Sequence record: ON529852.1
Strand: one strand, 5' to 3'
DNA length: 64,000 nucleotides
Shown: positions 30,868 to 64,000 of the stretch, in pieces
How the letters are laid out: the number at the start of each line of letters is the position of its first letter
How positions within the stretch are numbered: the stretch's first letter is position 1
Made by a program: the position numbers and the translations under genes
Notes under the pieces: model-generated
The model's input: the letters and a program-made list of their open reading frames with translations, nothing else
The model's database searches: none
Told to the model about the DNA's origin: nothing

Positions 30868-30962
30868 TTAACCCTTTGTTAAGACTTCCACCCTATGCTG
30901 TCTCTTAGGGAGGGATCGGCTGGGCCGTTAACCATGTTCGTTAGGGCGGCGTTAACCTTAAC
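30868..30962 (+). repeat. copy 2 of the ~95-bp + strand CtrA-promoter repeat
   Basis: Matches 29910-30004. Confidence 0.85.
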
Positions 30963-31070
30963 AAAACCTTAAGCCCGTTAACCTGAATCGTTAAGGTTAA
31001 CGGATTCGCCCGTCGCGTTAACCATGATTCGCAACGCACAAAGAAAGGGGGCTGTCAAGCCCCCTCCCTC

Positions 31071-31313
31071 TTAATCGTGGCGGAAGATCGTGCGGGGCTT
31101 GGCGGCCAGCCGCATGGCGTGGCGGCGCTCGATTCGCTTGCCCTGATAGAAGTAGGTGCAGCGACCGAAACGGCCCTTGGGGCCGCGATGGATGCGCGTG
31201 ACCAGTTCGCCGCCGTTCACTTGCGCGACCAGAACGGTCAGGCGGGCGGTGCGGGCCTCGACCAGCGAGGCGGTCAGGGCGTTGCGGGCGTTCAGTTCGC
31301 GAGCGGTTTGCAT
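31071..31313 (-). CDS. hypothetical basic protein, 80 aa
   Basis: CtrA promoter plus GGAGA RBS. Confidence 0.75.
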   Translation of the reverse strand: MQTARELNARNALTASLVEARTARLTVLVAQVNGGELVTRIHRGPKGRFGRCTYFYQGKRIERRHAMRLAAKPRTIFRHD

Positions 31314-31590
31314 CGGGCGTCTCCGTGAGGGCCAATCCCTCTTGACCTGACCAATATGGGGCCAAGAAGTTAACAAGAGGTTAACAGCGCGAGAAAAGTT
31401 CGCTGAAAACGACTCGCAAGTTTTCGGCCCTCGGCGCCGGGCGCGGAGGGGGCGCGGGCCTCGACCGGGCCGGGGCGGCGACCGGGCGGGCGCGGGCCTC
31501 GACCGGGCCGGGGCGACGGGCGCGGCCAGCCCGCCCCCCGGCGTGGGTCGGACGATCTGGGCGGGCCTCCCGTGGGCGGAAACGGCCCGA

Positions 31591-31738
31591 CGTCAAGTTC
31601 GCCCGCGTGGGTGAAAACGGCCCGACGTCAAGTTCGCCCGTGGGCGGAAATGAAGCCGCGTCAAGTCAAGTCCGCGAGCGAAAGCGAAGCGGCGTCAGGT
31701 CAAGCCCGAAGGCGAAAGCGACGCCGCGTCAGGTCAGG
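31591..31738 (+). repeat. CGTCA(A/G)GT array, locus 1 (5 units, 33-35 bp period)
   Basis: Cores at 31591, 31626, 31659, 31693, 31727. Confidence 0.8.
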
Positions 31739-32240
31739 ACAGGGCGACGCCGCGCACCATCAAGGTCGCCGGCTCGCCTGTGACGCCCTCGACGAAGGCC
31801 CCGTCGAAGTCCTGGACCTTGACCACATGGTCAGGCGGGAAGCCGAACGATTGCGTTTCGCCGTCCAGTCGGATGCAGTCCGGCGTCTCCTGTTCGAGGC
31901 GGACCACGGTGAACCACGAATGTTCCAGCACCATATCCGCGCCGTCCGGGTCGGCGATGTCGTCGTCTTGCAGGTCCAGTTGGTCGCCGGGGTGCAGGTC
32001 GCGCACGGCGATTTCGCTCGGGATGCTCGGCCCGTAATAGACCACGGCGCCGCCCTCGATCTTGCCGCCGGTCCAGCCGCGCGCGCGGGCGAAAGCGTAA
32101 AGGTCCACCGAGTCGGCGAAGACCGGGGACAGCAGGTCGGCCTCTTTCGGCCCCTTGCCGTCCGTGGGGTCGAACAGGAAGGTTCCCAGCGCGCCGGTGA
32201 CGGCGGTGCATTGGATGGCGAGGTGAGCGATCTTGGTCAT
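31734..32240 (-). CDS. hypothetical protein, 168 aa
   Basis: CtrA promoter plus RBS. Confidence 0.8.
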   Translation of the reverse strand: MTKIAHLAIQCTAVTGALGTFLFDPTDGKGPKEADLLSPVFADSVDLYAFARARGWTGGKIEGGAVVYYGPSIPSEIAVRDLHPGDQLDLQDDDIADPDGADMVLEHSWFTVVRLEQETPDCIRLDGETQSFGFPPDHVVKVQDFDGAFVEGVTGEPATLMVRGVALS

Positions 32241-32374
32241 CGGGCGTCTCCGGTTTCGATCCTGCTACCCTAGCGGACAGAAGTTAACAAGAGGTTAACG
32301 CCGGGGCGATTTTTCGAGCGCGCTCGGGGCGAGCGGGCGTTAACCTTAACGGCCGTTAACGAAGCCAGGCCCGC

Positions 32375-32704
32375 CTAGTGCGCGTGGAAGTCCACGCGAC
32401 CGGCGGGCGAGACGTCGAAGTCCCAGACGTTGAAGCGGGCGGCTTCGGCGGCCTCCGCCTCTTCAGCCGCGCGGGCGGCGGCGTAGGCCTCGCCCTCGGC
32501 CTTGTGGGCCGCTTCGGCCTCGGCCAGTTCCGCGCACTCGCGGGCGTAGGCCTCGGGGCAGCCGTAGCCCGTGGGGCGGTCGGGGCGCGCGTCGAGCCAA
32601 GCCCGCGCGGCGGCGACCGTGACGCCCGCCATGACCGGGCGGACGCCGTAGTCGTTGCGGTGCAGGGCGTAGTAGAGGTCGAGGGTTTCCTGATCGGCGG
32701 TCAT
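32375..32704 (-). CDS. hypothetical protein, 109 aa
   Basis: CtrA promoter plus RBS. Confidence 0.75.
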   Translation of the reverse strand: MTADQETLDLYYALHRNDYGVRPVMAGVTVAAARAWLDARPDRPTGYGCPEAYARECAELAEAEAAHKAEGEAYAAARAAEEAEAAEAARFNVWDFDVSPAGRVDFHAH

Positions 32705-32792
32705 CACGTCTCTCCGGCGGGCCAGTCCCGCCACGTCTTCACCCTAGCGGACAGGTATTAACAAGAGGTTAACGCCCGCGCGAAAATCGGGC

Positions 32793-32899
32793 AGGGTCCC
32801 CGGCGATGAATTGGGCAGGGTCCCCGGTCGAAAAATCAGGCAGGGTCCCCGGCGATGAATTGGGCAGGGTCCCCGGTCGAAAAATCAGACAGGGTCCCC
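32793..32899 (+). repeat. AGGGTCCCC array, locus 1 (5 units, 24/25 bp period)
   Basis: Cores at 32793, 32817, 32842, 32866, 32891. Confidence 0.9.
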
Positions 32900-32925
32900 G
32901 TTAACCTTAACGGGCGGGGGCCGCG

Positions 32926-33045
32926 CTAGGCTCCGCGTCCCTTGCGGGAGTAGGAGCCTTTGCCCTTGCGGGCCTTGACCACGCGGACCCGGTAAGCCGG
33001 GGTGGCGAGGGCGGCGGCGGCGGGGTTGCGTTTCGGGGCGGCCAT
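32926..33045 (-). CDS. arfA: ArfA-like alternative ribosome-rescue factor, 39 aa
   Basis: MAAPKRNPAAAALATPAYRVRVVKARKGKGSYSRKGRGA carries the L..P.(F/Y)R.RV.K.+KGKGSY.RK signature; own CtrA promoter and RBS. Confidence 0.8.
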   Translation of the reverse strand: MAAPKRNPAAAALATPAYRVRVVKARKGKGSYSRKGRGA

Positions 33046-33098
33046 GGGTGTCTCCGTGGTTGATGGAAACACCCTAGCCGACAGAAGTTAACAAGAGG

Positions 33099-33545
33099 TT
33101 AAGCGTCGGGATATTGCGCCTGAAGCTTCGCCAGCGTGGCCCGGTCCTCGGCTTCGGCGGCGCGGCGGGCCTCGTCGCGGCGCTTCGCGGCGGCGGTGCG
33201 CTTGGCGTCGCGGGCGGCGGTTTCAGGGGCCAGCCACGCCGGTTCAGCGCCCTCGGCGGCCGGGGCCAGGTATGCCAAGGGGAAAGACACCTCGGCCCAG
33301 TCCTGATAGCCGTAGCTTCCCGAAACGTAGAATTTGACGTCCACGGTTTCAGGCTTGTCGCCGCGCGCCTCGTCCAGTTCCCAGCTTTCGAGATAGCCAT
33401 AGACGACAGTGTCCAGACGTTGGTCCTTGGGCTTCACAGGCTCATCCAGCCGGAAGATGTAAATCGCGCGGGCCAAGTGCTCCAGCGCCTCGTTAAGGGC
33501 GTCGCGCTCGGTCACAAAAGCCTTGAGACGGTCAGGGGTCAGCAT
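33099..33545 (-). CDS. hypothetical protein, 148 aa
   Basis: RBS; stop lies in the next CtrA box. Confidence 0.8.
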   Translation of the reverse strand: MLTPDRLKAFVTERDALNEALEHLARAIYIFRLDEPVKPKDQRLDTVVYGYLESWELDEARGDKPETVDVKFYVSGSYGYQDWAEVSFPLAYLAPAAEGAEPAWLAPETAARDAKRTAAAKRRDEARRAAEAEDRATLAKLQAQYPDA

Positions 33546-33560
33546 GGGCGGTTCTCCGGT

Positions 33561-34034
33561 TCAGGTCGCGGCGGTTTCGGTCAGGGCGGCGCGCAGGGCT
33601 TGGGTGACGGGGTGGATCGTCAGGGGATAGACTTTCGAGACGTCCCAGTGGCGTTGCATCAGGGCTTCGGCCTCGTCCAGAGTCTCGGCGGTCCCCTCCT
33701 TCAGCTTGACCCAGCCGGGCGCGATAGACGACACGTCTTCCAGCACGACGAACGGCGCGGGCAGGCGGACGACCTCGAAGCGCAAGGCCGGGTTTTCGTC
33801 CACGCCGAACGACTTGGAGACTTTGAAGTGAGACTCGTCCATGACCCGCAGGGCGAAGCGGGCCTGATAGGTGTCCGCGTCTTTCTTTTCGATGAAGCGA
33901 CCCAGCCCGTTGTTGCGCTCCCACTCGGCCAGCTTCTTGGTGAAGCGGGCGGGCGGCTTCGGCGCGCCGTCAGTGAAGCGGATCGTGGCGCCGAACGGGG
34001 CCAGCGCGTGCAGTTCGGTGGCGGTCAGAAACAT
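33561..34034 (-). CDS. hypothetical protein, 157 aa
   Basis: CtrA promoter plus RBS. Confidence 0.8.
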   Translation of the reverse strand: MFLTATELHALAPFGATIRFTDGAPKPPARFTKKLAEWERNNGLGRFIEKKDADTYQARFALRVMDESHFKVSKSFGVDENPALRFEVVRLPAPFVVLEDVSSIAPGWVKLKEGTAETLDEAEALMQRHWDVSKVYPLTIHPVTQALRAALTETAAT

Positions 34035-34173
34035 GGGGCTCTCCCGGAAATGATGCTTCGGTTCTAGCACTGATTCGTTAACAGGAGGTTAACACACCGG
34101 GCGGGACTGGCGGGCGTTAACCTTAACGGGGCGCGGGCAGGATCAGGCCCGCCGTGGGAGGCGGGCCGTCGCC

Positions 34174-34686
34174 CTAGACCGTGATGGCGTCGCGGGCCTT
34201 GGTCAGTTCCTCGATCAGGGCATCAAGGCGGCGCACGGCCTCTTCGCCGCTATCGCAGCCTTCCTTGGCGTCCAGTTCCACCAAAACGGCGGTGAAGATG
34301 GTGTCGGACTCAAACATGGTTCCGGCCAGGGTTTCGTTCCCGGCGTAGTCCCCTTGGCCGTAGGTGTCGGCGAACTCGCGTTGCCACGGCGACAACGGCG
34401 TGTCGGGCAGGGTGACGCCCAGCGTGTGCGGCATCAGGTCGGTGGCGACTTTCAGGATTTGGAAAGAGCCCGCCATGCCGTCGTCATAGGCGCATTGCAG
34501 TTCCTTGGCGATCTGGCGGGCGAGGGCGTCGCCGGTCACCGCGCCTTGATCGTCGCCCAGCACGGCCTCGTCGTCGCCGAGGTCTCGGGTCAGCAACACG
34601 ATGGCCTGATATTGATGATCAGGGTGGGCGCGGCAATGTTCCACCACGTCGGCGCGGGGCAGGATGAAAGGGGTCAGGTCGGTCAT
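34174..34686 (-). CDS. hypothetical protein, 170 aa
   Basis: CtrA promoter plus RBS. Confidence 0.8.
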   Translation of the reverse strand: MTDLTPFILPRADVVEHCRAHPDHQYQAIVLLTRDLGDDEAVLGDDQGAVTGDALARQIAKELQCAYDDGMAGSFQILKVATDLMPHTLGVTLPDTPLSPWQREFADTYGQGDYAGNETLAGTMFESDTIFTAVLVELDAKEGCDSGEEAVRRLDALIEELTKARDAITV

Positions 34687-34799
34687 GGGCTCTCCCGTCG
34701 ATGTTGCATCGGTTCTAGCACCGATTCGTTAACAAGAGGTTAACACGCGCCCGGCTGACGGCGGGCGTTAACCTTAACGGAAGGTGAAGGGTCGGCGCG

Positions 34800-35129
34800 T
34801 CAGGGGAGGCGCGCCGGGTTCAGGGACAAGCTGACGCGGCGGGCCTTGGACGGCTTGCCGGTCAGGATTCGCTTGTCGGTCTTGGCCCCGCAGCAGGTGC
34901 AGACGGCGCGGCCTAGATCGAATCGGACCGAGGCCAGGGGGTCGGCGGTGCCGTTCACGGTCAGCTTGAGCGCCACGTCTGACAGCTTGGGGTGATGGCC
35001 CAGCCTGCCCCGGCGGCGCTCGGCGTGGGCGCTCATGCCCGCCGCGTTGCGGTTGCCCCGGCGGACCACAGTCCCGGCGACCTTGTAAAGGCCGCCGGAA
35101 AAGGTGTTGTCGATGACGTAGCGCCGCAT
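34800..35129 (-). CDS. hypothetical basic protein, 109 aa
   Basis: TGATG coupling; CTCCG motif. Confidence 0.7.
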   Translation of the reverse strand: MRRYVIDNTFSGGLYKVAGTVVRRGNRNAAGMSAHAERRRGRLGHHPKLSDVALKLTVNGTADPLASVRFDLGRAVCTCCGAKTDKRILTGKPSKARRVSLSLNPARLP

Positions 35130-35302
35130 CAGGCGCCCACGTCGAAACTGCCGACCTTGTTTCCGTTGACGTCGCGGACAGAACCCGCCTCGTCCCCGTT
35201 CTCGACCCTATCGGCGAGGGCGCGCAGGATGCGGGCGATTTCGTAGGCCTTGTCGCCGTCGTCAAAGGCGGCGTTGCCGGTTTCGATTTCCAGTTTGAAC
35301 AT
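35129..35302 (-). CDS. hypothetical phage protein, 57 aa (MFKLEIETGNAAFDD...RDVNGNKVG)
   Basis: CtrA promoter plus RBS; not in the ORF track. Confidence 0.8.
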   Translation of the reverse strand: MFKLEIETGNAAFDDGDKAYEIARILRALADRVENGDEAGSVRDVNGNKVGSFDVGA

Positions 35303-35457
35303 GGTCTGTCTCCGTTGCGATCCTTAGACCATAGACGACATAAGTTAACAAGAGGTTAAGGGCTTCACGGCCTGTTGCGAGGGGTTGGCGTTAACCTTAA
35401 CAGGCAGGACGAAAAGAGGGACGGCGCCGGTATGGCCGCCGTCCCGTTGCAGGCGGT

Positions 35458-35751
35458 TCAGGCCGCGAAGGGCCGATTACGGGCGCGACGCTCGCCGTAG
35501 TCGGTGACGGCCTCGCGCAGGTCCGAGAAGTAGTGACCCGACGAATAGCCAGGGCGCGGCTGGTTGCGATAGTCGACTCGCATATGGGTCACATAGCGAT
35601 TCGCGTCGTGATGGTCGGGGCCGAAGTCGCGCAGGACGATGGCGCCGGGTTCGGTGGCGGCGTCGCCGCGCAGTTTGAACTCCGCGAGGGTGGCGGGGAA
35701 CTTCGTCGCCGCTTCAGAGCGGGCCTTGATCTGGTTGAACAGGTCGGACAT
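35458..35751 (-). CDS. hypothetical protein, 97 aa
   Basis: CtrA promoter plus RBS; GHYFSD motif. Confidence 0.8.
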   Translation of the reverse strand: MSDLFNQIKARSEAATKFPATLAEFKLRGDAATEPGAIVLRDFGPDHHDANRYVTHMRVDYRNQPRPGYSSGHYFSDLREAVTDYGERRARNRPFAA

Positions 35752-35934
35752 CGGTTTCTCTCCTTCGATGCCCTAACATCGCACAAAAGTCTTAACGAAC
35801 CGTTAACACGGCAGGGGCCGGGCGGCGGGCGCGTGTTAAGGTTAACGGGACGACCCAAAAGAGGGGACGGCGGCCATCCCGGCGCCGTCCAGTTTGCCGC
35901 GATCAGCGTTCGCGGCGACGCGTTCGGTTGCCGC

Positions 35935-36228
35935 CTAGAGGGCCGTCAGGGCGTGCCACAGGGCGTTAGGGACCACGCCGCCCGCCGCGACCGGATCGAA
36001 GGCGGTTTCGCCGCCCTCGGGGCCGTAGTGGGGCATGACGTAGCCCGGCAGGGCGTCGATCATGCGGATGCGGTAGAGCGGCACGTCCGCGAAAGGCGGG
36101 TTCTCGACCAGACCCAGGACCTCGGCGCGGCCTTCGCCGCCGTTGAGGTAGCCCGGCGCATAGGTCACGATCTGACCCGGTGCAAAGGTGGTGTTTTCCG
36201 GGGTGCGGGCGGGGGCGATGCGGGTCAT
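35935..36228 (-). CDS. hypothetical protein (SH3-like), 97 aa
   Basis: RBS; FAPGQIVTY pattern. Confidence 0.75.
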   Translation of the reverse strand: MTRIAPARTPENTTFAPGQIVTYAPGYLNGGEGRAEVLGLVENPPFADVPLYRIRMIDALPGYVMPHYGPEGGETAFDPVAAGGVVPNALWHALTAL

Positions 36229-36229
36229 G

Positions 36230-36409
36230 TCAGGCTCCAGCGGACAGAAGGACGGCGGTCGAGAGGTGTTGCGTCGCCTGCTTGCGCAGGGCGGCGGTGA
36301 GGAGGCGGGCGGCTTCCTTGGCGTTCCCGGCCAGCGCCGCCGCTTCGGCGCGCTTGGCGAAAAAGGCCTTGGACTTGCGGGCGCGCCGGGCGCGTTGGTG
36401 GTCGGTCAT
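36230..36409 (-). CDS. hypothetical basic protein, 59 aa
   Basis: CtrA promoter plus RBS; not in the ORF track. Confidence 0.65.
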   Translation of the reverse strand: MTDHQRARRARKSKAFFAKRAEAAALAGNAKEAARLLTAALRKQATQHLSTAVLLSAGA

Positions 36410-36539
36410 CGGGCTTGCTCCCTTGTGATGCCCCTAGTCCTACAGGACAGAAGTTAACAAGGGGTTAACGCCACGAACTTTTCGGCCGCCGGGCGGCGCG
36501 GGCGGCGTTAACCTTAACGCCGGGCGGCGGCGGGGCGGC

Positions 36540-36755
36540 CTAGCGGCGGCCAGCCCCTTGGGTCTTTTGGGCCAGGCGCCGCTCGCGCCCGGCAGCCCAG
36601 CCCCGGCGGTAGGCGTCGCCGATCTGGCGACGATCCACGCCCGCCGCCCACGACATCCGGTTGTCGCGTCGCCCGTATTCCAACCCGGACTCGGCGTCGA
36701 TGACGCCGCCGTGATATTGCGCCATCAGGGCGCGTTCCGTGACCGGGAGCCCCAT
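36540..36755 (-). CDS. small protein, weakly Rmf-like, 71 aa
   Basis: AYRRGWAAG motif; TGATG coupling. Confidence 0.65.
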   Translation of the reverse strand: MGLPVTERALMAQYHGGVIDAESGLEYGRRDNRMSWAAGVDRRQIGDAYRRGWAAGRERRLAQKTQGAGRR

Positions 36756-36979
36756 CAGTGAACCCCGCCCAGCCGGGCGGCGCGCTGGCCGTCGTTTTCC
36801 ATGTAGAAGTGACCGTCGATGCGGTAGATGCGTTTCCCGGCGTCATAGGGGCGCAGGCCCCCGAACGCGACTTGGAAGGTGGCGGGGGCGTCGCCCACGT
36901 AGAGGGTCGCGCCGTCCGGCTTGACGCAGACGGCGACCCCCTCGCGGACCTGAACGGTTCCGATCAGACGGCGGGCCAT
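36755..36979 (-). CDS. hypothetical protein, 74 aa
   Basis: Coupled. Confidence 0.75.
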   Translation of the reverse strand: MARRLIGTVQVREGVAVCVKPDGATLYVGDAPATFQVAFGGLRPYDAGKRIYRIDGHFYMENDGQRAARLGGVH

Positions 36980-37278
36980 CAGGCGGCGGCCTTCTTGGCG
37001 GCGGGCTTATAGTCCTCGACGCGGCCTTCCAGCAGGGCGGCCCCGTCCAGCGGTCCCTCGAACGAGTCCACGTCGCCCATGGCCGCCATCGTCACGGCGC
37101 GGAAGGCCTTTTTGCGGACGACGGAATTCACCGCCCCGTCGTTGGCGCGGCTGACGGCGCGGTAGCAGGCTTCGGGGTGAGATTGAGCGCGGACGGTCTG
37201 CTTATAGACGCCCATGTCGTCGCCCATCCAGAACAGGACGACGAACTCTTGGCGTTCGGGGCGGATCGGGTGTTGCAT
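36979..37278 (-). CDS. hypothetical protein, 99 aa
   Basis: CtrA promoter plus RBS. Confidence 0.75.
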   Translation of the reverse strand: MQHPIRPERQEFVVLFWMGDDMGVYKQTVRAQSHPEACYRAVSRANDGAVNSVVRKKAFRAVTMAAMGDVDSFEGPLDGAALLEGRVEDYKPAAKKAAA

Positions 37279-37429
37279 CGCGGGTGGTCCCTTGCGGTGG
37301 TTTGTTCCCTTATACATAGGGGACAGAAGTTAACAAGAGGTTAAGACGCGAAAGTTTTTCAGGCGGGGCGGGCGGGCGTTAACCTTAACGGCGAGTTAAC
37401 GGGTCAGCGGCCCCGAAGGGCCGCCCCTG

Positions 37430-37849
37430 TCAGGCCGCGACCGGCTGGCGCAACAGGGTCCACAGGCGGTCCATCGCCTTGTTGACGACGTGGGGCGACC
37501 CGACGCCGAACGGCGTGACGTTGACCACGTCAGCGGACTTCCAGACATAGGCCCGGATCGTCGCGACGCGGGGTCCGTGCGGCGGCTGTTCGGTGGTGAC
37601 GAACAGGGTCACGCCCAAGCCGTGGAAGTCGTAGAAGCCGCCGGGGAACTTCGTGCCGAAGCCCTTCATGGCGCCTTTGTCGAACCAATGACCGCGACGA
37701 CGGCGGGCGTAGTCGCGTTCGATGTTGGCGAGGCAATTGCCCGATCCCTCGAAGGCCGGGCCTTCGTGCGGCGCGGGGGCGGCGGCGGCGAGGAGGCCCG
37801 GCAGGGCGGCGGCGGCGGCGAGGGCGATGCGTTCGGCTTGGGTGGTCAT
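37430..37849 (-). CDS. hypothetical protein, 139 aa
   Basis: CtrA promoter plus RBS. Confidence 0.8.
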   Translation of the reverse strand: MTTQAERIALAAAAALPGLLAAAAPAPHEGPAFEGSGNCLANIERDYARRRRGHWFDKGAMKGFGTKFPGGFYDFHGLGVTLFVTTEQPPHGPRVATIRAYVWKSADVVNVTPFGVGSPHVVNKAMDRLWTLLRQPVAA

Positions 37850-38317: not shown

Positions 38318-38370
38318 CGGTCGTCTCCGTTTCGATCCTTAGACCATAGGCGACAGAAGTTAACAAGAGG

Positions 38371-41403: not shown

Positions 41404-41406
41404 GGG

Positions 41407-53763: not shown

Positions 53764-53765
53764 GG

Positions 53766-57107: not shown

Positions 57108-57274
57108 GGGGTCTCCTCCCGTTGCTGACCCTCCCTGTATCGCACGAAGTTCTTAACAACAAGTTAACGCCGCGATTTATTTTCAGCGGGGGAGGCGGCG
57201 GCGTTAACCTTAACGCGCCGTTAAGGTTAACGCGAGCGGGTCGCAGGAAGAGAGAGGGCCGTAGCCCTCTCCCC

Positions 57275-57784
57275 TTATTGCTGCTCGACATGAGCGCGGT
57301 AATAGGCGACGCCTTCGGCCTCAGGCATCAGGTTCAGGATCACCGCCTGAGGCTGCTTCTCATGGATGACCTTGACGTGGGCGGCGAGCGGGTGCGGCGC
57401 CGTCAAGTCCATCTGGAAGATGCCGGGCGAGCCCGGTTTGGTGAAGAGGACTTTTTTCTTGATGGTGCGGCGATAGGCCTTGAGCCATTCGTGGGCGGTA
57501 ATCTCCTCGCCGATGAGCAAAGACAGGTCCATGTCGATCAGGCCCAGCCCTTCGGACAGGTCGAACTGGGGATAGGTCGCCTTGATGCGCGCCTCCAAGG
57601 CGGCGAGGTCGTCATAGGTGAATCGGCCGACCGGGTGGATGCGGTCTTCGCCGCCCTGGCCGGTGTTGGAGGCCTCGGCGAACTTCTCGCCATCGACATA
57701 GACGGTGGCGGTGTAGGCGGTCGTCTCCTCCGACAGGGACGGCATGGTCTTGAGGTTCTTGAGGGTGATGACGGGTTTCTGCAT
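57275..57784 (-). CDS. hypothetical phage protein, 169 aa
   Basis: CtrA promoter plus RBS; LKNLK....SEET.AYTA.VY.DG...A..SNTGQGG motif. Confidence 0.8.
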   Translation of the reverse strand: MQKPVITLKNLKTMPSLSEETTAYTATVYVDGEKFAEASNTGQGGEDRIHPVGRFTYDDLAALEARIKATYPQFDLSEGLGLIDMDLSLLIGEEITAHEWLKAYRRTIKKKVLFTKPGSPGIFQMDLTAPHPLAAHVKVIHEKQPQAVILNLMPEAEGVAYYRAHVEQQ

Positions 57785-57922
57785 GGCGGTCTCCTGATCC
57801 GGCGATGTCTCACCCTAGCCGCAAGGTCTTAACAAATCGTTAACGCCGGTCAGCCTCGGCGCTGCGTTAAGGTTAACGCGGTCGGGTCGCAAAAAGGCGC
57901 CCGGTCGAAGCCGGGCGCTGGT

Positions 57923-58063
57923 TCAGGCGGCGGTGCGGTAGCGGGTGTGGCCCCGGTCCCAGGCGTAGGCCTCGACCGATCCGCTCGGGTGGGGGTTGTT
58001 CCACCACTTGACGCCCCGGTGCGCGGCGGCGTAGCCCGCGCCTTCGATCTGGGCGGCGTCCAT
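57923..58063 (-). CDS. Rmf/CrpP-like small protein, 46 aa
   Basis: GAGYAAAHRG...NPHPSGS.EAYAWDRGH; TGATG coupling. Confidence 0.55.
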   Translation of the reverse strand: MDAAQIEGAGYAAAHRGVKWWNNPHPSGSVEAYAWDRGHTRYRTAA

Positions 58064-58317
58064 CAGGCGCCGATCCGGTGGGCCGGGCAGAAGCCCGACA
58101 CGACCTTGACGCGACCGCGCTTGAAGCCGGGGCGCAGGGCGCGCGCCGAGCGTTCGGCGTCGGCGGTCTTCATGTGGCCGCAGGCGCAGGATGCGCCGGG
58201 GTCGCGGGCCTTGGCCTCGCGCACCTTGTCGGCGCCGGCCTGGGTGCCGAGCCAGCCGCAAAAGGGCTCGCCGCCGACCGTGATGTGAGCGGGTTGGGTG
58301 TTAGTCATCGTCGCCAT
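58063..58317 (-). CDS. hypothetical Cys-containing protein, 84 aa
   Basis: ORF track; GAGGAGG RBS. Confidence 0.7.
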   Translation of the reverse strand: MATMTNTQPAHITVGGEPFCGWLGTQAGADKVREAKARDPGASCACGHMKTADAERSARALRPGFKRGRVKVVSGFCPAHRIGA

Positions 58318-58837
58318 CCTCCTCGTCCTGGGGCATGTCTTCGGCGTCGGTCAGGCCGGTGACGGTCCACCAGCCGAGGCCCTGGGCGTCGCCCGAGGTG
58401 TAGCCTTCACGGACCATCGTCGCCATCTGTTCCAGCGCGTCGGCCACGTCCTCGTCGGTCATGGCGTCGTGACCGTTGAAGGTGAAGGTCGGCTTGACCG
58501 TCACCGGGGCGGGGGTCGATTCGCTGTTGATCTCTTCATGATGCGTCACGCTCTCGGCGACGATCTTAGCGAGGTCGTCGCCGACCAGCATCCAGTCTTC
58601 GGCGTCGCCGTCCGGGTCATAGACGACGAAGGCGCCGGGGTATTGCGCGACGCGGGCGCGCCAGCCGATGCGCACCTCGGCGTGTTTCTCGGCGATCCAG
58701 TCTTCGCCCATTTGGGTCGCGCCCGCGTAGGCGCCGACATGGAAATTGGTCGTCATCAGTTCGCTGCGAGTGGCGACGCGCAGGCCCCACACGTCGAGGG
58801 CGGTCTGGGCTTGCGTCAGGGTCATGGCCTCGGGCAT
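58301..58837 (-). CDS. hypothetical protein, 178 aa
   Basis: GGAGA RBS. Confidence 0.8.
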   Translation of the reverse strand: MPEAMTLTQAQTALDVWGLRVATRSELMTTNFHVGAYAGATQMGEDWIAEKHAEVRIGWRARVAQYPGAFVVYDPDGDAEDWMLVGDDLAKIVAESVTHHEEINSESTPAPVTVKPTFTFNGHDAMTDEDVADALEQMATMVREGYTSGDAQGLGWWTVTGLTDAEDMPQDEEDGDDD

Positions 58838-58847
58838 CGGGGTCTCC

Positions 58848-59045
58848 TTAGAGATGGATCGCGGCGTCGAACGCCTGGGATTGCAGTTTCTTGGCGGCTT
58901 CGGCCTCGGCGGGGTAGAGCCGGGCCAGGCCGTCAAAGCGTTCTTTCTGATGCGAGCGCTCGCCCTCGGCGGCGGTCATGTGCATGACCTCGCCCCACAG
59001 GTGGGCCATTTCGAGGATCAGGACAGAGCGGCGGGAAGCGTTCAT
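58848..59045 (-). CDS. hypothetical protein, 65 aa
   Basis: CtrA promoter plus RBS. Confidence 0.75.
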   Translation of the reverse strand: MNASRRSVLILEMAHLWGEVMHMTAAEGERSHQKERFDGLARLYPAEAEAAKKLQSQAFDAAIHL

Positions 59046-59097
59046 GGCGGTCTCCTTGTTGACCTCGCCACCCTAGCAGCGAGGTCTTAACAAGAGG

Positions 59098-59583
59098 TTA
59101 ACAGCGGCGAAGCATTTCACGCATCAGGGCTTCCTCGTTGCGGGCGATGTCCAGCGCGGCGCGGTCGTGGCCCTGCTCATACGCCAGCTTGGCCTGCTGT
59201 CGGCAGATGTCCTGGCGCTTGCGGATGTCCGCCTCGGACAGGGTGCGGAACAGGGCGTCGGCCTCCTGATCGACCTTGGCGGTCCATTTCTGCTGCGATT
59301 CGTCCTCGCTTTGCAGATGGGCCGGGAAGTAGAGTTCAGCGACCTCTTGCGCAAAGAAGGTCCCGTCGTTGCCGAGCGCCTGACAGATGGCCTCGACTTC
59401 GCCGGGGGCGATCTCCTCGCAGAGCGTGGTCTTGTAGTCGCCCAGGCCGTCGCCCTCTTCGATGAAGCGCGCGATTTGAGTGAGGTCCATGGCGTCCACC
59501 TTGATCCGGTCCTGAGGATCGCGGGCGAGGTGCAGGACCGTCACGGTGACGGTGGTGCGGATGAAGGTCGGCGTGTCGGTCAT
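59098..59583 (-). CDS. hypothetical protein, 161 aa
   Basis: CtrA promoter plus RBS; stop in a CtrA box. Confidence 0.8.
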   Translation of the reverse strand: MTDTPTFIRTTVTVTVLHLARDPQDRIKVDAMDLTQIARFIEEGDGLGDYKTTLCEEIAPGEVEAICQALGNDGTFFAQEVAELYFPAHLQSEDESQQKWTAKVDQEADALFRTLSEADIRKRQDICRQQAKLAYEQGHDRAALDIARNEEALMREMLRRC

Positions 59584-59741
59584 GGGGGTCTCCCGCGTTT
59601 CGTTGCTCAGGTTCTAGCACCGATTCGTTAACAAGAGGTTAACAAGGTTCGCGGCGGCGCCGGGCGTTAACCTTAATGCGCTGTTAAGGTTAACGGCGGG
59701 CGGGCGAAAGGGACGCCCCGGCGCGAGGCCGGGGCGCGGGG

Positions 59742-59954
59742 TCAGTAGGGCCGGTCGAGGATGCGCCAGCCGGGCTTGTCGTCGGGGCCGGTCTCCGGCT
59801 CGACCTGATAGACGGTCCAGCGCTGGCCCATCGGCGATTGCAGGGCGGCGGTGGTGTCCGGGTAGGTCTTTTCGGTCACGTCGCGGTCGTCCTTGGCGAG
59901 CCAGTCGCCGACCCACGGTTCGCCGGTGCGGTGCAGCAGGTAAACGGCCCCCAT
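59742..59954 (-). CDS. hypothetical protein, 70 aa
   Basis: TGATG coupling. Confidence 0.7.
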   Translation of the reverse strand: MGAVYLLHRTGEPWVGDWLAKDDRDVTEKTYPDTTAALQSPMGQRWTVYQVEPETGPDDKPGWRILDRPY

Positions 59955-60166
59955 CAGACGACCGCCAGCAGGCGCGAGTGCGAGGTCTCGACCGAATAGG
60001 CCTCGATCTGGAGCCCCGGCAGGGCGGCGCGCAGTTCGTCGCGCACAGCGAGGGCTTCGGCGGGGTCTTCGGTGGTCAGGCGCAGTTCGCCGATCCGGCG
60101 GGCTGGGGCGCCCTCGGCGGCGCGGCGCGACAGTTCCAGCCGCAGGTCGTAGGGGGTGTCGGTCAT
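59954..60166 (-). CDS. hypothetical protein, 70 aa
   Basis: CtrA promoter plus RBS. Confidence 0.75.
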   Translation of the reverse strand: MTDTPYDLRLELSRRAAEGAPARRIGELRLTTEDPAEALAVRDELRAALPGLQIEAYSVETSHSRLLAVV

Positions 60167-60219
60167 CAGTGTCTCCCGTGATTGAGCGTCCGGTATAGCC
60201 GGAAGGTCTTAACAAATCG

Positions 60220-60591
60220 TTAACGGCTGGGTGCGCTTAGGCGGGCGATGATTTCGTCGTTCGTCATCGTGTCCATCAGGTCCTGGACCTGCCGGGCCTT
60301 GTCATCCTCGACCGCCTGGGCCGCCGCCTGGGCGCGGCGATGCTCGGCCAGCGCCGCCTTGCCGGCCTCGGTGGTCTCCGGGTCGATGGTCATGTAAAGG
60401 CTGACCTCGCGGCCCTGCCGATCCACGAAGGTCAGGCTTCCAGACGGCCGCACCTTGACGGTGAAGTGATGCTTGACCAGCCGCTCGGCGGTTTCCTGAC
60501 CGAAGTCGCCGCCGAAACTGCCGCCCGCCGCCTTGACGGTGTTGTCGCTCTTGAGCCGGGTGTGATAGCCGACGTTCTTGTAGGGGGGCAT
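60220..60591 (-). CDS. hypothetical protein, 123 aa
   Basis: AAGGAG RBS; stop in a CtrA box. Confidence 0.75.
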   Translation of the reverse strand: MPPYKNVGYHTRLKSDNTVKAAGGSFGGDFGQETAERLVKHHFTVKVRPSGSLTFVDRQGREVSLYMTIDPETTEAGKAALAEHRRAQAAAQAVEDDKARQVQDLMDTMTNDEIIARLSAPSR

Positions 60592-60601
60592 GGGGCGCTC
60601 C

Positions 60602-60940
60602 TTAGAAGGGAATGTCGTCGTCGAACGACGGGGGCGGGGCGTAGGTCTGGGCGGCGCGGGCGCGGCGGGCCGCGTCCATCTCGGCGCGCTCCTCGTCCGT
60701 CGCGCTCCAATACTCGTCGTCTTCCGGGTGCGCGCCGGGCTCGCCCTGATAATGCGGGTTGCGGACCCAAGCGTCGAACGGGTGCAACAGCCACTCACGC
60801 TCGGGGACCTCGTAGCCTTCCGAACGGGCGAAGCCCGACAGGGCCAGGCTCATGAACTCGCCTTGGCTCAGCGACTCCATCGCCAGAGCGTCTTCCTTTT
60901 CGCGGCGGGCCTCTTCGGCCATTTCGATAACGTCACGCAT
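60602..60940 (-). CDS. hypothetical phage protein, 112 aa
   Basis: CtrA promoter plus RBS; WLLHPFDAWVRNPHYQG.PG.HPEDD motif. Confidence 0.8.
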   Translation of the reverse strand: MRDVIEMAEEARREKEDALAMESLSQGEFMSLALSGFARSEGYEVPEREWLLHPFDAWVRNPHYQGEPGAHPEDDEYWSATDEERAEMDAARRARAAQTYAPPPSFDDDIPF

Positions 60941-61120
60941 CGGCGTGTCTCCTTGTGAGCCACCCTTATGCCATCCAGAAGTTAACAACAAGTTAACGCC
61001 GACGCTTTTCTGGATTTTTCTTCGGGCGGCGGCTCCGGGCGTTAACCTTAACAGCCTGTTAAGGTTAACGCGACCCGGTCGCAGGTGAAATCCGGTGTCC
61101 CAGGGTGGGACACCGGCCTT

Positions 61121-61189
61121 TCAAAAGGTGAGCAGGATGACCAGCAGGGCCAGAAAGAGGCGGGAGGCTCCGGCCAGCTTGTCGATCAA
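61121..61189 (-). CDS. possible hydrophobic peptide, 22 aa
   Basis: TTGA overlap; RLFLALLVILLTF. Confidence 0.35.
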   Translation of the reverse strand: MIDKLAGASRLFLALLVILLTF

Positions 61190-61785
61190 GAGCGGTCGGC
61201 CAGCGCGCGACGGTTCAGCGCCGCCAGCAGGTCGTCCACCAGAAGCTTGTGAAGGCGACGCTTTTCAGGATCGCCCTCGTCCCGCAGCGGTACGTCCACC
61301 AGAGGCGTGGCCTCGGCATCGTAGGCGAAGATGATTTCGGTCACGCCTTGCGCCTCTTGGGCGTAGTAGGCGGGCTGGATGAAGGCGACAGGACGACCGT
61401 CGCGAGTGACTTCGCCGCTCAGGGCGGCATCGAAGGCGCCGGCTATGTAGGTCTTGATGGCGTCGCGGTCCTTACCGCTCACCTTCAAATCGAAGCCTGA
61501 CGTCAGCGAGGGGGTTACGGTCACGACGTGTTCCGTCCAGCCGTCATAGCCGCCGCTGGCGTCCATGTGGTGATAGGATGTCAGGAAGACCAGCTTGGAC
61601 GGCGTCGAGCGGTCCAGATCAAGCGTGGTCCCCGCATCGAAGCCCGATCCGCTGGGCATGGCTTCCTTGACCATCGCCGTGAGCCTGTCGGTGTGGCGGT
61701 CCAGCCATTCCGTGTTGTCGGTGGCGATGCAGGTCAGGCGCGCTTGCACCAGCGTCGCCAGAGCGACATAGAGAGGACGGATCAT
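61186..61785 (-). CDS. hypothetical phage protein, 199 aa
   Basis: CtrA promoter plus RBS; PSGSGFDAG...YHHMD..G.YDGWTEH.V.V.PSL motif. Confidence 0.8.
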   Translation of the reverse strand: MIRPLYVALATLVQARLTCIATDNTEWLDRHTDRLTAMVKEAMPSGSGFDAGTTLDLDRSTPSKLVFLTSYHHMDASGGYDGWTEHVVTVTPSLTSGFDLKVSGKDRDAIKTYIAGAFDAALSGEVTRDGRPVAFIQPAYYAQEAQGVTEIIFAYDAEATPLVDVPLRDEGDPEKRRLHKLLVDDLLAALNRRALADRS

Positions 61786-61938
61786 CAGGGTCTCCTTTGT
61801 GTGTTCCGAGGCTGCAATCTACCCGACAAGGTCTTAACAAAAAGTTAACAGCAGCGCAATCGCTTTTCTTCGCGGCGTTAACCTCTTGTTAACTTCTTCG
61901 TGGGATAAGGGTCAGGTCAACAACACAGGAGATCGCCG

Positions 61939-62184
61939 ATGGGCGAAGTCATCCCGCACCGCGTCTGGCATCACAAGCCGTCAGGCCGCACCGCCAGCAT
62001 CTTCGGCGCCGTCCCTTGGGTCTCGGCGGCGCAAGAGTCCGAATGGGAACGGGTCACGGTCGGCTGGACCGTCCGCCACCCGGACGGCACGACCGGGGTC
62101 GGTCGCTTCGCCTTCGAGACGAAGGACGAGGCGCAGGCTTGGGTCGATAAGAATCCCAACTTCCCCGGCATGAGCCAAGGCTAG
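61939..62184 (+). CDS. hypothetical protein, 81 aa (only + strand cassette)
   Basis: + strand CtrA box at 61878-61892, CAGGAG RBS, GCAA-loop hairpin after the stop. Confidence 0.85.
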   Translation: MGEVIPHRVWHHKPSGRTASIFGAVPWVSAAQESEWERVTVGWTVRHPDGTTGVGRFAFETKDEAQAWVDKNPNFPGMSQG

Positions 62185-62443
62185 TCACAGGGGCGTCGGT
62201 CGCAAGGCCGGCGCCCTTCGTCGTTGCGACCCGCTCGCGTTAACCTTAACAGAGCGTTAACCTTAATGCCCCTGCCCGCTCCAGGGGTATGACCGGGTAG
62301 GACCAGGTATGACCGGGTCATACCGGCGCGGATTCCCACTGAAAATCACCCAAATTCGCCGAATTGCGCCCGAAATCGCCGGATTTTGACCCTAAAACGC
62401 TGTTTTTGCTCGATTTTTCGGTATTTCAGGCCCGGCGGCGGCC

Positions 62444-62597
62444 GTTAACCTTAACAAGGCGTTAACCTTAACGCGGTTTTGGTTAACGGGGCGTTAACCT
62501 TAACGCCTGGATGGTTAACGCGGTGTTAACCTTAACGCGGTGATGGTTAACGGGCCGTTTACCTTGACGGCGGGAGGGTTAACGGCCCCAGGGTTAA
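62444..62597. repeat. 32-bp-period tandem array of CtrA boxes
   Basis: TTAA-N7-TTAA at 62451, 62483, 62515; near-match at 62547; half-site at 62579. Confidence 0.85.
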
Positions 62598-62606
62598 TCG
62601 GGGCGG

Positions 62607-62873
62607 CGTCAAATCGCGCTCGCGTCAAATTCGGCCGGCGTCAAATCGAAACGCCGTCAAGTCAAGTCTGTCGCGTTGAAGCGCGCTCGCGTCAAATCGG
62701 CCGATCGTCAAATCGCGCTCCCGTCAAATCCAGATCGCGTCAAATTCGCGGGGCGTCAAATCGCGCTCCCGTCAAATCGACCGGGCGTCAAATCGGCGAG
62801 GCGTCAAATCGACCGGGCGTCAAATCGTCGAGGCGTCAAGTCGACCGGGCGGCCTGAAGCGGGCCGGCGTCAA
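62607..62873 (+). repeat. CGTCAA(A/G)T array, locus 3 (15 cores, 16-bp period)
   Basis: 62607, 62623, 62639, 62655, then 62690 to 62834 every 16 bp, and 62868. Confidence 0.92.
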
Positions 62874-63075
62874 GTCGGGCTGCCAGGGCGCGCCCGAGCG
62901 GGCTTGCGCGGCGCTCCGCCTCCCAGGGAGGACGCCTGGAAGAAACGGCCTGAAGCGCGCCCCAGCGCCTCTTTTTACCCCGAGCCGGGGCAGGGTCAAG
63001 CCGAACAGGGTCGAGAAGGCCGTTTTCCGGGCCGTGGAGCGCCCTGGCGCGGGCGGGGCGTCCGCAGGCTCGGCA

Positions 63076-63513
63076 GAGTCACGAAACCCATCCACGGGCC
63101 GGAAAACCAGGCAGGACGGGCGATTGTCAGTCATGATACCTGCGAACGATGACTCTGCCGGGATTTTTGTCAGTCACGAAACCCGGAGGCGGGCTTAGCC
63201 GGCGATCCCGGCGCCCAGGCGGGTCAGTGTCAGCGATTGTATCAATGCGGGACACAATAAGGCGAGATTAGGGCGAAATGCGATTTCAGGGCGGAGTCAC
63301 GTTTGCCGGAGGCGGAGTCACGTTTGCCGACGAAGAATCAATGACTTAGCGACGATCTGGGCGCGGTCGGCGACCAGGCGGCGGCCGTGAAACAATTCCA
63401 GATCGACGATTCCGGGCGGCGCTCAGAAAACGTGACTCAGTCGAGCCTTTGAAATCATTGAGGAAATCGGGACGATCGCGATGTGAGTCACATCATGCAC
63501 CAACGATGACTCC
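63076..63513. repeat. cluster of (G)AGTCA / TGACT(C) motifs including N16 dyads
   Basis: Dyads at 63128-63155 and 63485-63512; GGAGTCACGTTTGCCG twice (63293, 63314). Confidence 0.75.
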
Positions 63514-63592
63514 GTCAGTCGAGGCGCAAAAACAGGCAAAATCACAGTAAAATCAGTGATTTAGGGGCGTTTTTCGGGATTTTGGGGTGAAA

Positions 63593-63775
63593 TTAGCGGC
63601 GATTCCGGTGAAATCGGTCGATGGCGGTGTCGTGAGGGGCTTGCCGCCCGTCAAAACGCCCTGCACGCTCCCGATGACGCCGTTTGCGCTCCCAGGGACC
63701 GGGCCAGATGATCTGGACGGTCCAGACCAGCAGCAGGAGGAACACAAAGGCCCCCATGACGATCGCTACCCACAT
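63593..63775 (-). CDS. possible small membrane protein, 60 aa
   Basis: N-terminal hydrophobic helix; GGAGAG RBS. Confidence 0.5.
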   Translation of the reverse strand: MWVAIVMGAFVFLLLLVWTVQIIWPGPWERKRRHRERAGRFDGRQAPHDTAIDRFHRNRR

Positions 63776-63805
63776 CGCGCGCTCTCCGTGACCTGGTGAA
63801 TGACC

Positions 63806-64000
63806 AGGGTCCCCGACGGATGAATCTGGAGGGTCCCCCGACCGAAAATTCGCCAGGGTCCCTGGACGAAAAATTCCAAAGGGTCCCCGGCCGTTAATTC
63901 AGCAGGGTCCCCCGGTCGAAAAATCCCGAGGGGTCCCCGCGTTGAATTCGCCAGGGTCCCTGGGCGATGAATCCAGACGGGTCCCCGGTCCAGAAAATCC
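63806..64000 (+). repeat. AGGGTCCCC array, locus 3 (at least 8 units, 24-26 bp period, runs off the window)
   Basis: Cores near 63806, 63830, 63855, 63880, 63904, 63929, 63953, 63978. Confidence 0.9.

Follow-up and report, generated by a model that had tools for sequence, protein, structure and literature searches.

What is the role of the paired repeat arrays that recur at three places, always in the same orientation, near the end of the sequence record of a giant phage? Brevundimonas phage vB_BpoS-Kabachok (ON529852.1), hereafter Kabachok, is a giant prolate siphovirus of the Dolichocephalovirinae, also called the phiCbK-like phages, with a genome of 356,285 bp; its host of isolation is B. 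pondensis. The stretch analyzed here, referred to as the window, consists of the final 64,000 bases of the Kabachok record, and an exact comparison (0 mismatches) gives the record coordinate as window + 292,285. The record was deposited as circular and by convention begins at the large terminase gene (terL), and the paper that describes the phage is silent on the genome ends. An earlier note on this DNA had described three loci in which an array of CGTCA(A/G) units is followed, at a fixed distance of about 1.2 kb, by an array of a second unit, and had proposed a signal for staged genome injection, for terminal-repeat generation and packaging, or for CtrA-gated replication initiation. Here, we show that the three loci are copies of one conserved, strand-specific, non-coding module, and that the separation of its two arrays, which is the same for every copy in a genome, equals the length of the tail in B-form DNA, a relation established as a correlation across genera. 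The earlier proposal is partly supported: the link to the terminal repeat is borne out, staged injection is plausible, and a replication origin is unsupported.

Three Copies of a Two-Array Module in Kabachok

The exact 9-mer AGGGTCCCC of the second array occurs 15 times in the window, in every case on the + strand and in three blocks at 32793-32899, 45844-45972, and 63806-63912. Shuffled versions of the window contain 0.82 +/- 0.83 copies, and none of 100 shuffles reaches 15. A scan of the whole genome (356,285 bp) finds 16 copies, on one strand only and all inside the three arrays, the third of which continues in degenerate units to 63986 and ends 12 bp beyond the window, on the other side of the origin of the circular record. 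For the first array, the pattern GCGTCARNTC is found 19 times in the window against 2.0 expected and is confined to the three loci, and genome-wide the CGTCA clusters occur at the same three loci only, 1.20-1.24 kb upstream of the AGGGTCCCC arrays. The whole-genome scan for both arrays, set beforehand as a test for copies scattered along the genome, returned none beyond these loci, and all three module copies lie within about 11% of the genome.

According to Tandem Repeats Finder, the second arrays have periods of 24/49, 24, and 25 bp at loci 1, 2, and 3, and the first arrays have periods of 34-35, 36, and 16/32 bp. Together with the motif counts, these values confirm the array positions and periods reported in the earlier note, and its start-to-start distances (1202, 1235, and 1199 bp), its single shared orientation, and its spacing of 13 kb and 18 kb between loci are correct. 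Its description of the intervening DNA as unrelated also holds, except for GAGTCAC-type dyads common to loci 2 and 3, which share 13-mers. The note had overlooked clusters of GTTAACCTTAAC (TTAAC-type), which flank every module on both sides, as well as the location of the locus 2 second array in a coding sequence. When the units of the first array in Kabachok are read on the early-transcribed strand, they include TTGACG/TTGACGC.

Conservation of the Module in Other Phages

The module is present with an identical order of parts in at least 13 phages of at least eight genus-level lineages, most of the genes on either side being unrelated. Its parts, as read along the early-transcribed strand, are TTAAC boxes, 4-9 GGGGACCC units about 24 bp apart (the second array described above), about 0.6-1 kb of dyads and/or genes, a lineage-specific T-rich array (CGATTTGACGC in Kabachok), a TTAAC array, and the early genes. 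The GGGGACCC core is invariant across phages with hosts from the Caulobacterales, Sphingomonadales, and Rhodobacterales; the unit of the other array differs by lineage (CGATTTGACGC, GCGTTTTGACGC, GACGCCATTCCATTTCGCC, GCCATTTTCGCTATCG, or GCTATGGATCGAGGCCATTTTG). In the phiCbK-type Caulobacter phages, the counterpart of the locus 3 second array is found 850-990 bp from the physical left end, inside the annotated terminal repeats, and in Colossus the match lies at 354-482. In phiCbK and Colossus, the terL stop codon and TTAAC boxes are followed by six GGGGACCC units about 24 bp apart, a small open reading frame (ORF) with GTCAC..GTGAC dyads, an array of TTGACGC or GACGCCATT units, a TTAAC array with a palindrome, and the early genes.

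Gurke and Kikimora, whose identity with Kabachok is 75-85% over small parts of this region only, have three modules each, syntenic with those of Kabachok. Bajun has two modules, and CcrPW, CcrSC, BL47, and the phiCbK-like Caulobacter phages including phiCbK and Colossus have one each. Outside the subfamily, there is one module in Lacusarx (Sphingobium), RXM (Citromicrobium), and DSS3P8 (Ruegeria), and there are two in vB_EliS-L02 (Erythrobacter; hereafter L02). The metagenomic contig L020 carries one, with its array just after the terL gene. The array starts 75-370 bp past the terL stop codon in Kabachok, Gurke, Kikimora, phiCbK, Bajun, Lacusarx, RXM, and L020, and among the relatives examined only DSS3P8 departs from this place next to the terL end; there the module is about 6 kb from terL and the region examined contains no TTAA-N7-TTAA boxes. 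Conservation of the small terminase subunit extends from Kabachok as far as the out-group L02.

When 185,579 bacterial and archaeal genomes were scanned for two adjacent units, 94 single pairs turned up, scattered among them, about 70 being estimated by chance, and none of the 80 listed among these 94 is from the Caulobacterales. A host-derived site was rejected, since the pairs are near the chance level. Likewise, a structured RNA was rejected, Rfam covariance models giving no match at any array even at E<=1. A pattern scan of IMG/VR returned chiefly single chance pairs and was informative for CcrPW, Rogue, BL10, Karma, Colossus, a 279-kb metagenomic relative, and L020. Recent tandem duplication of the start of the repeat was set aside because an all-against-all BLASTP comparison of the ORFs in window 25-64 kb shows no paralogy between the blocks. 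The positions at which the records of relatives begin vary, are arbitrary, and were uninformative. The module is undescribed in the literature searched, where motif searches returned unrelated primer sequences only, and the arrays are unmentioned in Gill et al. (2012), in the paper describing Kabachok, and in the paper on CtrA sites (PMC9437464).

Two further observations concern similar repeats elsewhere. Tandem GGGTCCC arrays with periods of 12-30 bp occur in unrelated phage contigs of widely differing GC content, namely L029, L036, and L061 (IMG/VR, 38-43% GC), L035, L046, L047, and L022. Three low-GC contigs have an identical 9-unit GGGTCCC array followed by AT-rich DNA, and the gene context of the arrays in the low-GC contigs gave no functional clue. 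In the Mesorhizobium phage Cp1R7A-A1, two to three GGGTCCCC units (14678-14715) lie in the 3' part of the terL coding sequence and are separated by about 820 bp from a 17-bp array (TGGAAAATCCTCCCGTT) that follows closely on the terL stop codon, an arrangement that may be a variant of the module overlapping terL.

Array Separation and Tail Length

The centre-to-centre separation of the two arrays is 1189, 1205, and 1185 bp in Kabachok, 1171, 1166, and 1091 bp in Gurke, 1132, 1125, and 1090 bp in Kikimora, 969 and 990 bp in Bajun, and 809 and 797 bp in L02. The pooled standard deviation is 24 bp within genomes versus 146 bp between genomes, and within a genome the separation is near-identical whether the spacer consists of non-coding dyads or of protein-coding genes. 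The fixed ruler of about 1.2 kb claimed in the earlier note is a property of the Kabachok-type phages and does not extend to other relatives, in which the separation is 0.70-1.03 kb.

Across seven genera, the separation follows the tail length measured by transmission electron microscopy (TEM): 695 bp and 221 nm in RXM, 803 bp and 240 nm in L02, 825 bp and 254 nm in Lacusarx, 913 bp and 300 nm in phiCbK, 939 bp and ~300 nm in DSS3P8, 1018 bp and 336 nm in Colossus, and 1193 bp and 398 nm in Kabachok. The correlation coefficient is r=0.993, with 2 of 5,040 permutations as good, and a fit through the origin gives 0.323 nm/bp, which is essentially the rise of B-DNA. The separation is also proportional to the length of the tape-measure protein in ten phages, at 0.467 bp/residue with an intercept of 23 bp. 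This slope corresponds to 0.159 nm per residue, equal to the figure accepted for the length of tail that each residue of a tape-measure protein spans. Given genome size, the partial r is 0.93 for tail length and 0.85 for tape-measure length; for genome size itself, it is 0.04 given tail length and -0.14 given tape-measure length. The most informative case is DSS3P8, which combines a small genome (146 kb) with a long tail and in which the separation follows the tail. For L02, a separation of 740-790 bp was forecast before measurement, and 797-809 bp was observed.

The Terminal Repeat and Its Ends

Gill et al. (2012) mapped the phiCbK ends experimentally and placed the left end inside codon 652 of terL and the right end between genes 20 and 21, with a direct terminal repeat (DTR) of 10,287 bp; in Colossus, they found a repeat of ~16.7 kb with its left end just downstream of terL. 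Packaging of phiCbK starts, by their inference, at the left (terL) end. RXM has a DTR of 10,992 bp and Lacusarx a 10.5-kb double-coverage repeat, and the repeats of BL47 and CcrSC, with one module each, measure 24-30 kb (30 kb in BL47). The orthologous module lies within the mapped or annotated DTR of phiCbK, Colossus, CcrSC, BL47, and RXM and in the double-coverage repeat of Lacusarx, and its position is the terL-proximal edge of the long DTR, DSS3P8 excepted. The terminal-repeat link put forward in the earlier note is thus strongly supported by homology, both by these orthologous modules and by a variant of the second-array motif at the right DTR cut. The variant, GGGACCCAAGGCC, has the same orientation as the array units, and in three phages its start precedes the annotated right DTR end by 44-45 bp: phiCbK (10243, boundary 10287), CcrSC (23902, boundary 23946), and BL47 (30129, boundary 30174). 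Right after the boundary, all three read GGCGCCT. In Colossus (17194), Bajun, Gurke, and Kikimora, GGGACCCAAGGCC adjoins the protease/portal genes.

In Kabachok, GGGACCCAAGGCC lies at window 26,123 on the - strand, where the domain of CtrA boxes begins, and orthologues of the terminal-repeat genes of phiCbK and Colossus are collinear across window 30-54 kb. Because the boundary motif, the CtrA-box domain, and the collinear orthologues delimit one block, a Kabachok DTR is predicted that would extend over ~38-39 kb, from window ~26,084 through the window end and into or just past terL. Its left end may lie at record ~1,146, homologous to the cut of phiCbK and CcrSC in terL, or in the 360-bp gap after terL. 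A repeat of this size would not be out of scale since annotated repeats of relatives reach 30 kb, and by the same homology all three Kabachok modules would lie inside it.

The distance from the array to the annotated or mapped left end is 355-1944 bp. A solitary GGGGACCC unit is located 58 bp upstream of the mapped left end of Colossus, and the CcrPW record begins at that unit. For phiCbK and CcrSC, which are cut inside terL with no GGGNCCC within 200-400 bp, a left cut always near a GGGACCC unit was rejected, as was, with the single module in the 30-kb repeat of BL47, a module copy number proportional to repeat length.

Two observations on the repeats of individual phages may be added. In L02, at 12930-12970, directly past the terL stop codon, a solitary CTATCGAGCGAGGCCATTTTGG is followed by GGGGACCC, with one unit per array type; the pair recalls the solitary unit near the Colossus left end, at a distance of 58 bp, and the left cut of L02 may lie here. 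The distal part of the BL47 repeat (~25.3-30.0 kb) consists of about five or six tandem copies of a ~885-bp three-gene unit (gp049-gp064), and a perfect 454-bp tandem duplication lies at 14972-15879, so that the BL47 repeat seems to grow by local tandem duplication.

An Array within a Coding Sequence

At locus 2, the second array lies in frame within a gene that is conserved in Kabachok (KABACHOK_05560), Gurke, and Kikimora. The N-terminus of the Kabachok protein is a run of 8-residue GDPxxFxx repeats, which is the translated DNA array, and the number of these repeats varies among the three phages (6, 6, and 4). The rare codons GGG-GAC-CCT are kept in every unit, and because they are invariant in proteins that are merely 51-52% identical, the constraint acts on the nucleotides.

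The CtrA-Box Early Domain

In the whole-genome scan, 70 of the 72 TTAA-N7-TTAA boxes fall in 36 kb of the window (26492-62515). Most of the small - strand genes in this domain carry their own promoter, with the consensus GTTAACCTCTTGTTAAC..GCTAG, and the domain begins abruptly at the predicted terminal-repeat boundary. The earlier note had placed a rare + strand CtrA promoter ahead of each locus. This holds at 30868 and 61878, both full TTAA-N7-TTAA boxes in + orientation, the latter driving the + strand gene at 61939-62184, but not at 44407, which has no more than a half-box, together with TTGACG and a -10-like element, GCTAGG; a further + oriented box lies at 29910, and the pattern is weak overall. 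In phiCbK-like phages, CtrA sites are known to be concentrated in the DTRs, and a 'lytic deferment' model has been described (PMC9437464). The Kabachok modules occupy the same compartment, embedded in and bracketed by TTAA-N7-TTAA and TTAAC sites. The GGGGACCC and CGTCA-type arrays are not CtrA sites, however, and that paper covers CtrA sites only; the arrays, their pairing, and their spacing are absent from it.

Features of the Three Loci

The coordinates of the module parts, of neighboring genes, and of the predicted repeat boundary are collected in Table 1.

Table 1. Features of the Kabachok window (window coordinates unless marked as record coordinates).
Feature	Position	Strand	Remarks
Predicted right DTR boundary	26070..26123	-	Reads GGGACCCAAGGCCCCCC..ATTTTCGCCGG|GGCGCC on - strand; predicted cut near window 26,084
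CtrA-box (TTAA-N7-TTAA) domain	26492..62515	.	Small, individually promoted early genes on - strand; body of predicted terminal repeat
Locus 1 flank	30868..31035	+	+ oriented CtrA-box promoter-like site (30868) with GTTAACC/TTAAC cluster
Locus 1 first array	31569..31736	+	CGTCA(A/G)GT(C/T) units, 34-35 bp period; early-transcribed strand shows TTGACG
Locus 1 spacer	31734..32704	-	Two genes, 31734-32240 and 32375-32704 (annotation)
Locus 1 second array	32783..32900	+	5 x AGGGTCCCC, alternating 24/25 bp period, GTTAACCTTAAC directly after
ArfA-like gene	32926-33045	-	Locus 1 second array just downstream of it
Locus 2 flank	44330..44445	+	TTAAC cluster; promoter-like half CtrA box with TTGACG and GCTAGG
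Locus 2 first array	44608..44794	+	36-bp units GCGTCAAATCGAAACGGCGTCAGGTCAAGTGCGCGG, 5.2 copies
Locus 2 terminator-like hairpin	44810-44850		
Locus 2 dyads	44870..45085	.	GGAGTCACG-N12-CGTGACTCC; includes period-35 Tandem Repeats Finder row
KABACHOK_05560	45097..46104	-	335 aa; N-terminal part encoded by locus 2 second array
Locus 2 second array	45841..45972	+	6 x AGGGTCCCC, period exactly 24 bp, within coding sequence
Locus 3 flank	61878..62184	+	+ strand CtrA-box promoter (61878); small gene KABACHOK_05870 (61939-62184)
Locus 3 palindrome and TTAAC region	62285..62585	.	Palindrome (62285-62325), AT-richer stretch, GTTAACCTTAAC/GGTTAAC array (62444-62585)
Locus 3 first array	62596..62880	+	~15 GCGTCAAATCGNNNNN units, 16-bp period
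Locus 3 dyads	63070..63520	.	GAGTCACG / CGTGACTC family, plus AT-richer DNA
KABACHOK_05880	63593..63775	-	Small ORF (60 aa); positional equivalent of phiCbK gp001
Locus 3 second array	63806..64000	+	8-9 (A/G/C)GGGTCCC(C/T) units, 24-26 bp period; 12 bp beyond window
terL	record 372-3095	-	Kabachok annotation
terS	record 3336-4025	-	Kabachok annotation

The spacer arrangement of locus 1 is likewise found in Gurke and Kikimora. The palindrome/TTAAC region of locus 3 has counterparts in phiCbK (1930-2165) and Colossus (1550-1790), dyads resembling those of locus 3 (GTCAC..GTGAC) occur in phiCbK, Colossus, and CcrPW, and the stop codon of terL (- strand) is about 360 bp past the second array. None of the genes within the modules has a Pfam or PHROG match. 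The ArfA (alternative ribosome-rescue factor A) homologue beside locus 1 encodes 39 aa (Pfam E=6e-10), and Kikimora has a syntenic one.

Just beyond the TTAAC array of the terL-proximal module lies a palindrome, GGTATGACCGGGT..ACCCGGTCATACC, at 62285-62325 in Kabachok, 2128-2165 in phiCbK, and 1738-1767 in Colossus, and its position is conserved in these three phages and in CcrPW. Outside the arrays, the whole Kabachok genome contains 19 and 20 GGGTCCC/GGGACCC sites per strand against roughly 70 expected, as estimated from base composition. This scarcity would fit an avoidance of stray signals or a restriction avoidance of GGWCC-type palindromes.

Proposed Mechanism and Alternative Explanations

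Since it is only in the tail lumen that a stretch of DNA can be physically matched to the tape-measure protein, a function during the passage of the genome through the tail is favored. By analogy with the injection stop of T5, the module may be a two-point, tail-length-matched checkpoint on DNA in transit, a reading to which we give a substantial chance, if one somewhat below even. Both arrays would be protein-binding sites that are engaged simultaneously at the two ends of the tail conduit during transit of the linear genome: the portal/neck would contact the invariant GGGGACCC array, and the tail tip or cell side would contact the lineage-specific one. The two-point contact would lead to a pause in genome delivery, during which the host-CtrA-driven early genes of the terminal repeat could be expressed before the remaining genome enters, and Kabachok-type phages would pass three successive checkpoints. 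As a single site, the GGGACCC core would position the right-end cut 44-45 bp downstream, and its location at this distance from the cut points to the portal/terminase machinery as the reader of the motif. If Gill et al. are right that packaging proceeds from the terL end, it is the other end that leads during entry, and the universally conserved module would then lie at the inner edge of the entering repeat. The segment that enters would hold precisely the early genes driven by host CtrA. In its fullest form, the proposal is that the separation is a DNA copy of the tail length, that delivery is halted by two-point contact at one (phiCbK) to three (Kabachok) positions, and that GGGGACCC is an arrest word read both ways by the portal/terminase channel, with a single site setting the right-end cut; this form we put forward tentatively, as less likely than not.

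Several points speak against the checkpoint and against the tail-length rule that underlies it. The array centres were set by the analyst, with an uncertainty of ~20-30 bp, and the tape-measure lengths of four of the ten phages come from tblastn coordinates. The product of separation and 0.34 nm, divided by tail length, is 1.02-1.14 and not exactly 1, and the correlation runs over non-independent lineages with kinship ignored. The ruler is contradicted by the published TEM tails of three phages, Gurke (241 nm), Kikimora (317 nm), and Marchewka (257 nm), in PMC10070969 Table 1. These tails are much shorter than their tape-measure proteins of 2,340-2,432 aa, almost the length of that of Kabachok, would lead one to expect, and their listed capsid widths of 42-92 nm do not agree with the 53-56 nm of relatives, which suggests a scale or measurement error. 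The ends of the Kabachok DTR are predicted by homology, unlike the mapped ends of phiCbK, and BL47 and CcrSC combine 24-30-kb repeats with a single module, which leaves no simple copy-number rule. The order of entry is deduced from the packaging start inferred by Gill et al., and staged DNA entry in phiCbK-like phages is hypothetical. The DnaA boxes of the T5 stop region are absent from the modules, and the link of the GGGACCC core to cut sites would suit a role in packaging equally well.

Such a role is the main rival to the checkpoint. The GGGGACCC arrays would load the small terminase or packaging motor and single GGGACCC sites would direct the end cuts, as a pac-like signal for packaging and the terminal repeat; we consider this rather unlikely, and it is compatible with a checkpoint. 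It accords with arrays directly downstream of terL (DSS3P8 apart) and 0.35-1.9 kb from the mapped or annotated left end, with GGGACCCAAGGCC at its 44-45 bp from the right DTR end of phiCbK, CcrSC, and BL47, with the solitary GGGGACCC unit 58 bp from the left end of Colossus, at which the CcrPW record starts, and with a small terminase conserved from Kabachok to L02. The two or three copies deep inside the repeat (Kabachok, Gurke, Kikimora, Bajun, L02) would, however, provide competing initiation sites. A terminase site would be expected once per unit genome, but the first three of these phages have three full modules each and the last two have two. The left cut of phiCbK and CcrSC within terL has no GGGNCCC in the surrounding 200-400 bp, the distance between left end and array varies from 355 to 1944 bp, and the DSS3P8 module is ~6 kb from terL. 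Taken alone, packaging leaves the second array, the constant spacing, and the tail-length scaling unexplained; the two functions could be combined if the portal/terminase channel reads the motif in both directions. That the separation should track tail length is equally without reason under transcriptional or RNA-level control, in which the arrays would be operator, roadblock, or sponge sites, or structured or protein-binding transcript repeats, that punctuate the CtrA-driven early block. This we think improbable, although the modules lie in the CtrA-box domain with TTAAC clusters on both sides, and the GGGGACCC arrays are in transcribed DNA: one within a coding sequence, one just past the ArfA gene, and one in the 5' leader sequence of a small ORF. 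The early-strand unit of the first array moreover contains TTGACGC, which resembles the Caulobacter sigma-73 -35 consensus TTGACGS. No Rfam family matches the arrays (E<=1), the bacterial and archaeal scan found no similar arrays in host genomes, and the GGGGACCC core is invariant across three host orders while promoters differ, the DSS3P8 region examined being without TTAA-N7-TTAA.

Direct-repeat arrays, dyads, and somewhat AT-richer stretches give the loci a superficial likeness to iteron origins or sopC/parC arrays, and they could in principle be iteron-type replication origins or centromere-like partition sites in three copies. We rate this as highly improbable, and the CtrA-gated replication initiation proposed in the earlier note finds no support. 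The DnaA box TTWTNCACA occurs twice in the genome and 0 times in window 25-64 kb, and the module arrays contain no TGATCCACA-like site. The GC skew, which is positive over record 316-356 kb and follows gene orientation genome-wide, shows no switch at the modules, the most AT-rich windows are not module-specific and so mark no unwinding element, and Pfam and PHROG reveal no initiator, ParA, or ParB-like gene next to the modules. One array is in coding sequence, the copies are confined to about 11% of the genome, and an origin or partition site again gives no reason for scaling with tail length. It is scarcely credible that the modules lack a function and are left over from ancient tandem duplications at the start of the terminal repeat, alike in spacing by shared ancestry only. 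The dyad 13-mers common to loci 2 and 3 point that way, but there is no gene paralogy between the three blocks, and the separation is kept where the spacers are unrelated and filled with genes, as at locus 1 and in the second module of Bajun and of L02. Motif, order, orientation, and number are conserved between phages with only about 75% identity over small parts of the region, and the rare codons are kept inside the coding sequence.

Comparison with Known Systems

Phages with long terminal repeats, such as T5, SPO1, the phiCbK-like phages, and the jumbo siphoviruses, carry conserved non-coding repeat regions for which no sequence rule or mechanism has been established. The two-array module is simple and strand-specific and spans at least eight genus-level lineages on three orders of Alphaproteobacteria. 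Its short motif predicts the right terminal-repeat boundary within a few bases, which helps to annotate 'circular' assemblies such as that of Kabachok, and the match of separation to tail length is a quantitative law that is testable through the spacer or the tape-measure protein. The checkpoint would offer a natural explanation of why early promoters that depend on host CtrA are confined to the terminal repeat. If it is true, the physical dimensions of the virion are written into the genome, and staged genome injection would have its first rule of sequence and geometry, along with a concrete handle on the 60-year-old question of how T5 stops.

Terminase sites, such as lambda cosB/cosQ, the pac sites of SPP1 and P22, and the short repeats flanking the T7 terminal repeat, resemble the module in being short, repeated, putative protein-binding sites by the terminase genes and near the packaging start, and in both cases there is a related single site, here at a fixed 44-45 bp from the cut end. 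They differ in that full copies of the module lie 13-31 kb from the packaging start, that the array is 0.35-1.9 kb from the left cut as opposed to within about 200 bp, and that a second, distinct array lies one tail length away. Sites of the pac/cos type usually diverge quickly, whereas the module core is invariant across genera. Iteron and centromere arrays, such as lambda ori, F sopC, and R1 parC, likewise consist of regularly spaced tandem direct repeats, each with a small imperfect palindrome (GGG-N-CCC in the module). The modules, in contrast, have no adjacent initiator or partition genes and no skew or unwinding signature, one of their arrays is part of a coding sequence, and the strand that carries the arrays is strictly fixed with respect to the genome ends.

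The left terminal repeat of T5 contains conserved untranslated repeat regions, R1-R3, that include the injection stop signal (iss), R3 being ~1.2 kb with nine direct repeats. There is no sequence similarity between the module and T5, the paired DnaA boxes in the T5 inverted repeats have no equivalent in the modules, and the number of modules is one to three. The module consists of two homogeneous tandem arrays at tail-length spacing, whereas the R2-R3 distance in T5 is 1.9-4.3 kb and no ruler has been reported; the arrest of DNA transfer, inferred for the modules, is experimentally shown in T5. Both systems lie in a direct terminal repeat that is non-permuted, has a length of ~10 kb or more, and bears the genes expressed first, and in both the repeat regions are far better conserved than the neighboring genes. 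The main block is at the inner edge of the repeat, which for the phiCbK-like module is the case only if the right end enters first. On these grounds, the module would be kin to the conserved repeat regions in the terminal repeat of T5, and the tail-length rule, if it holds, would be new.

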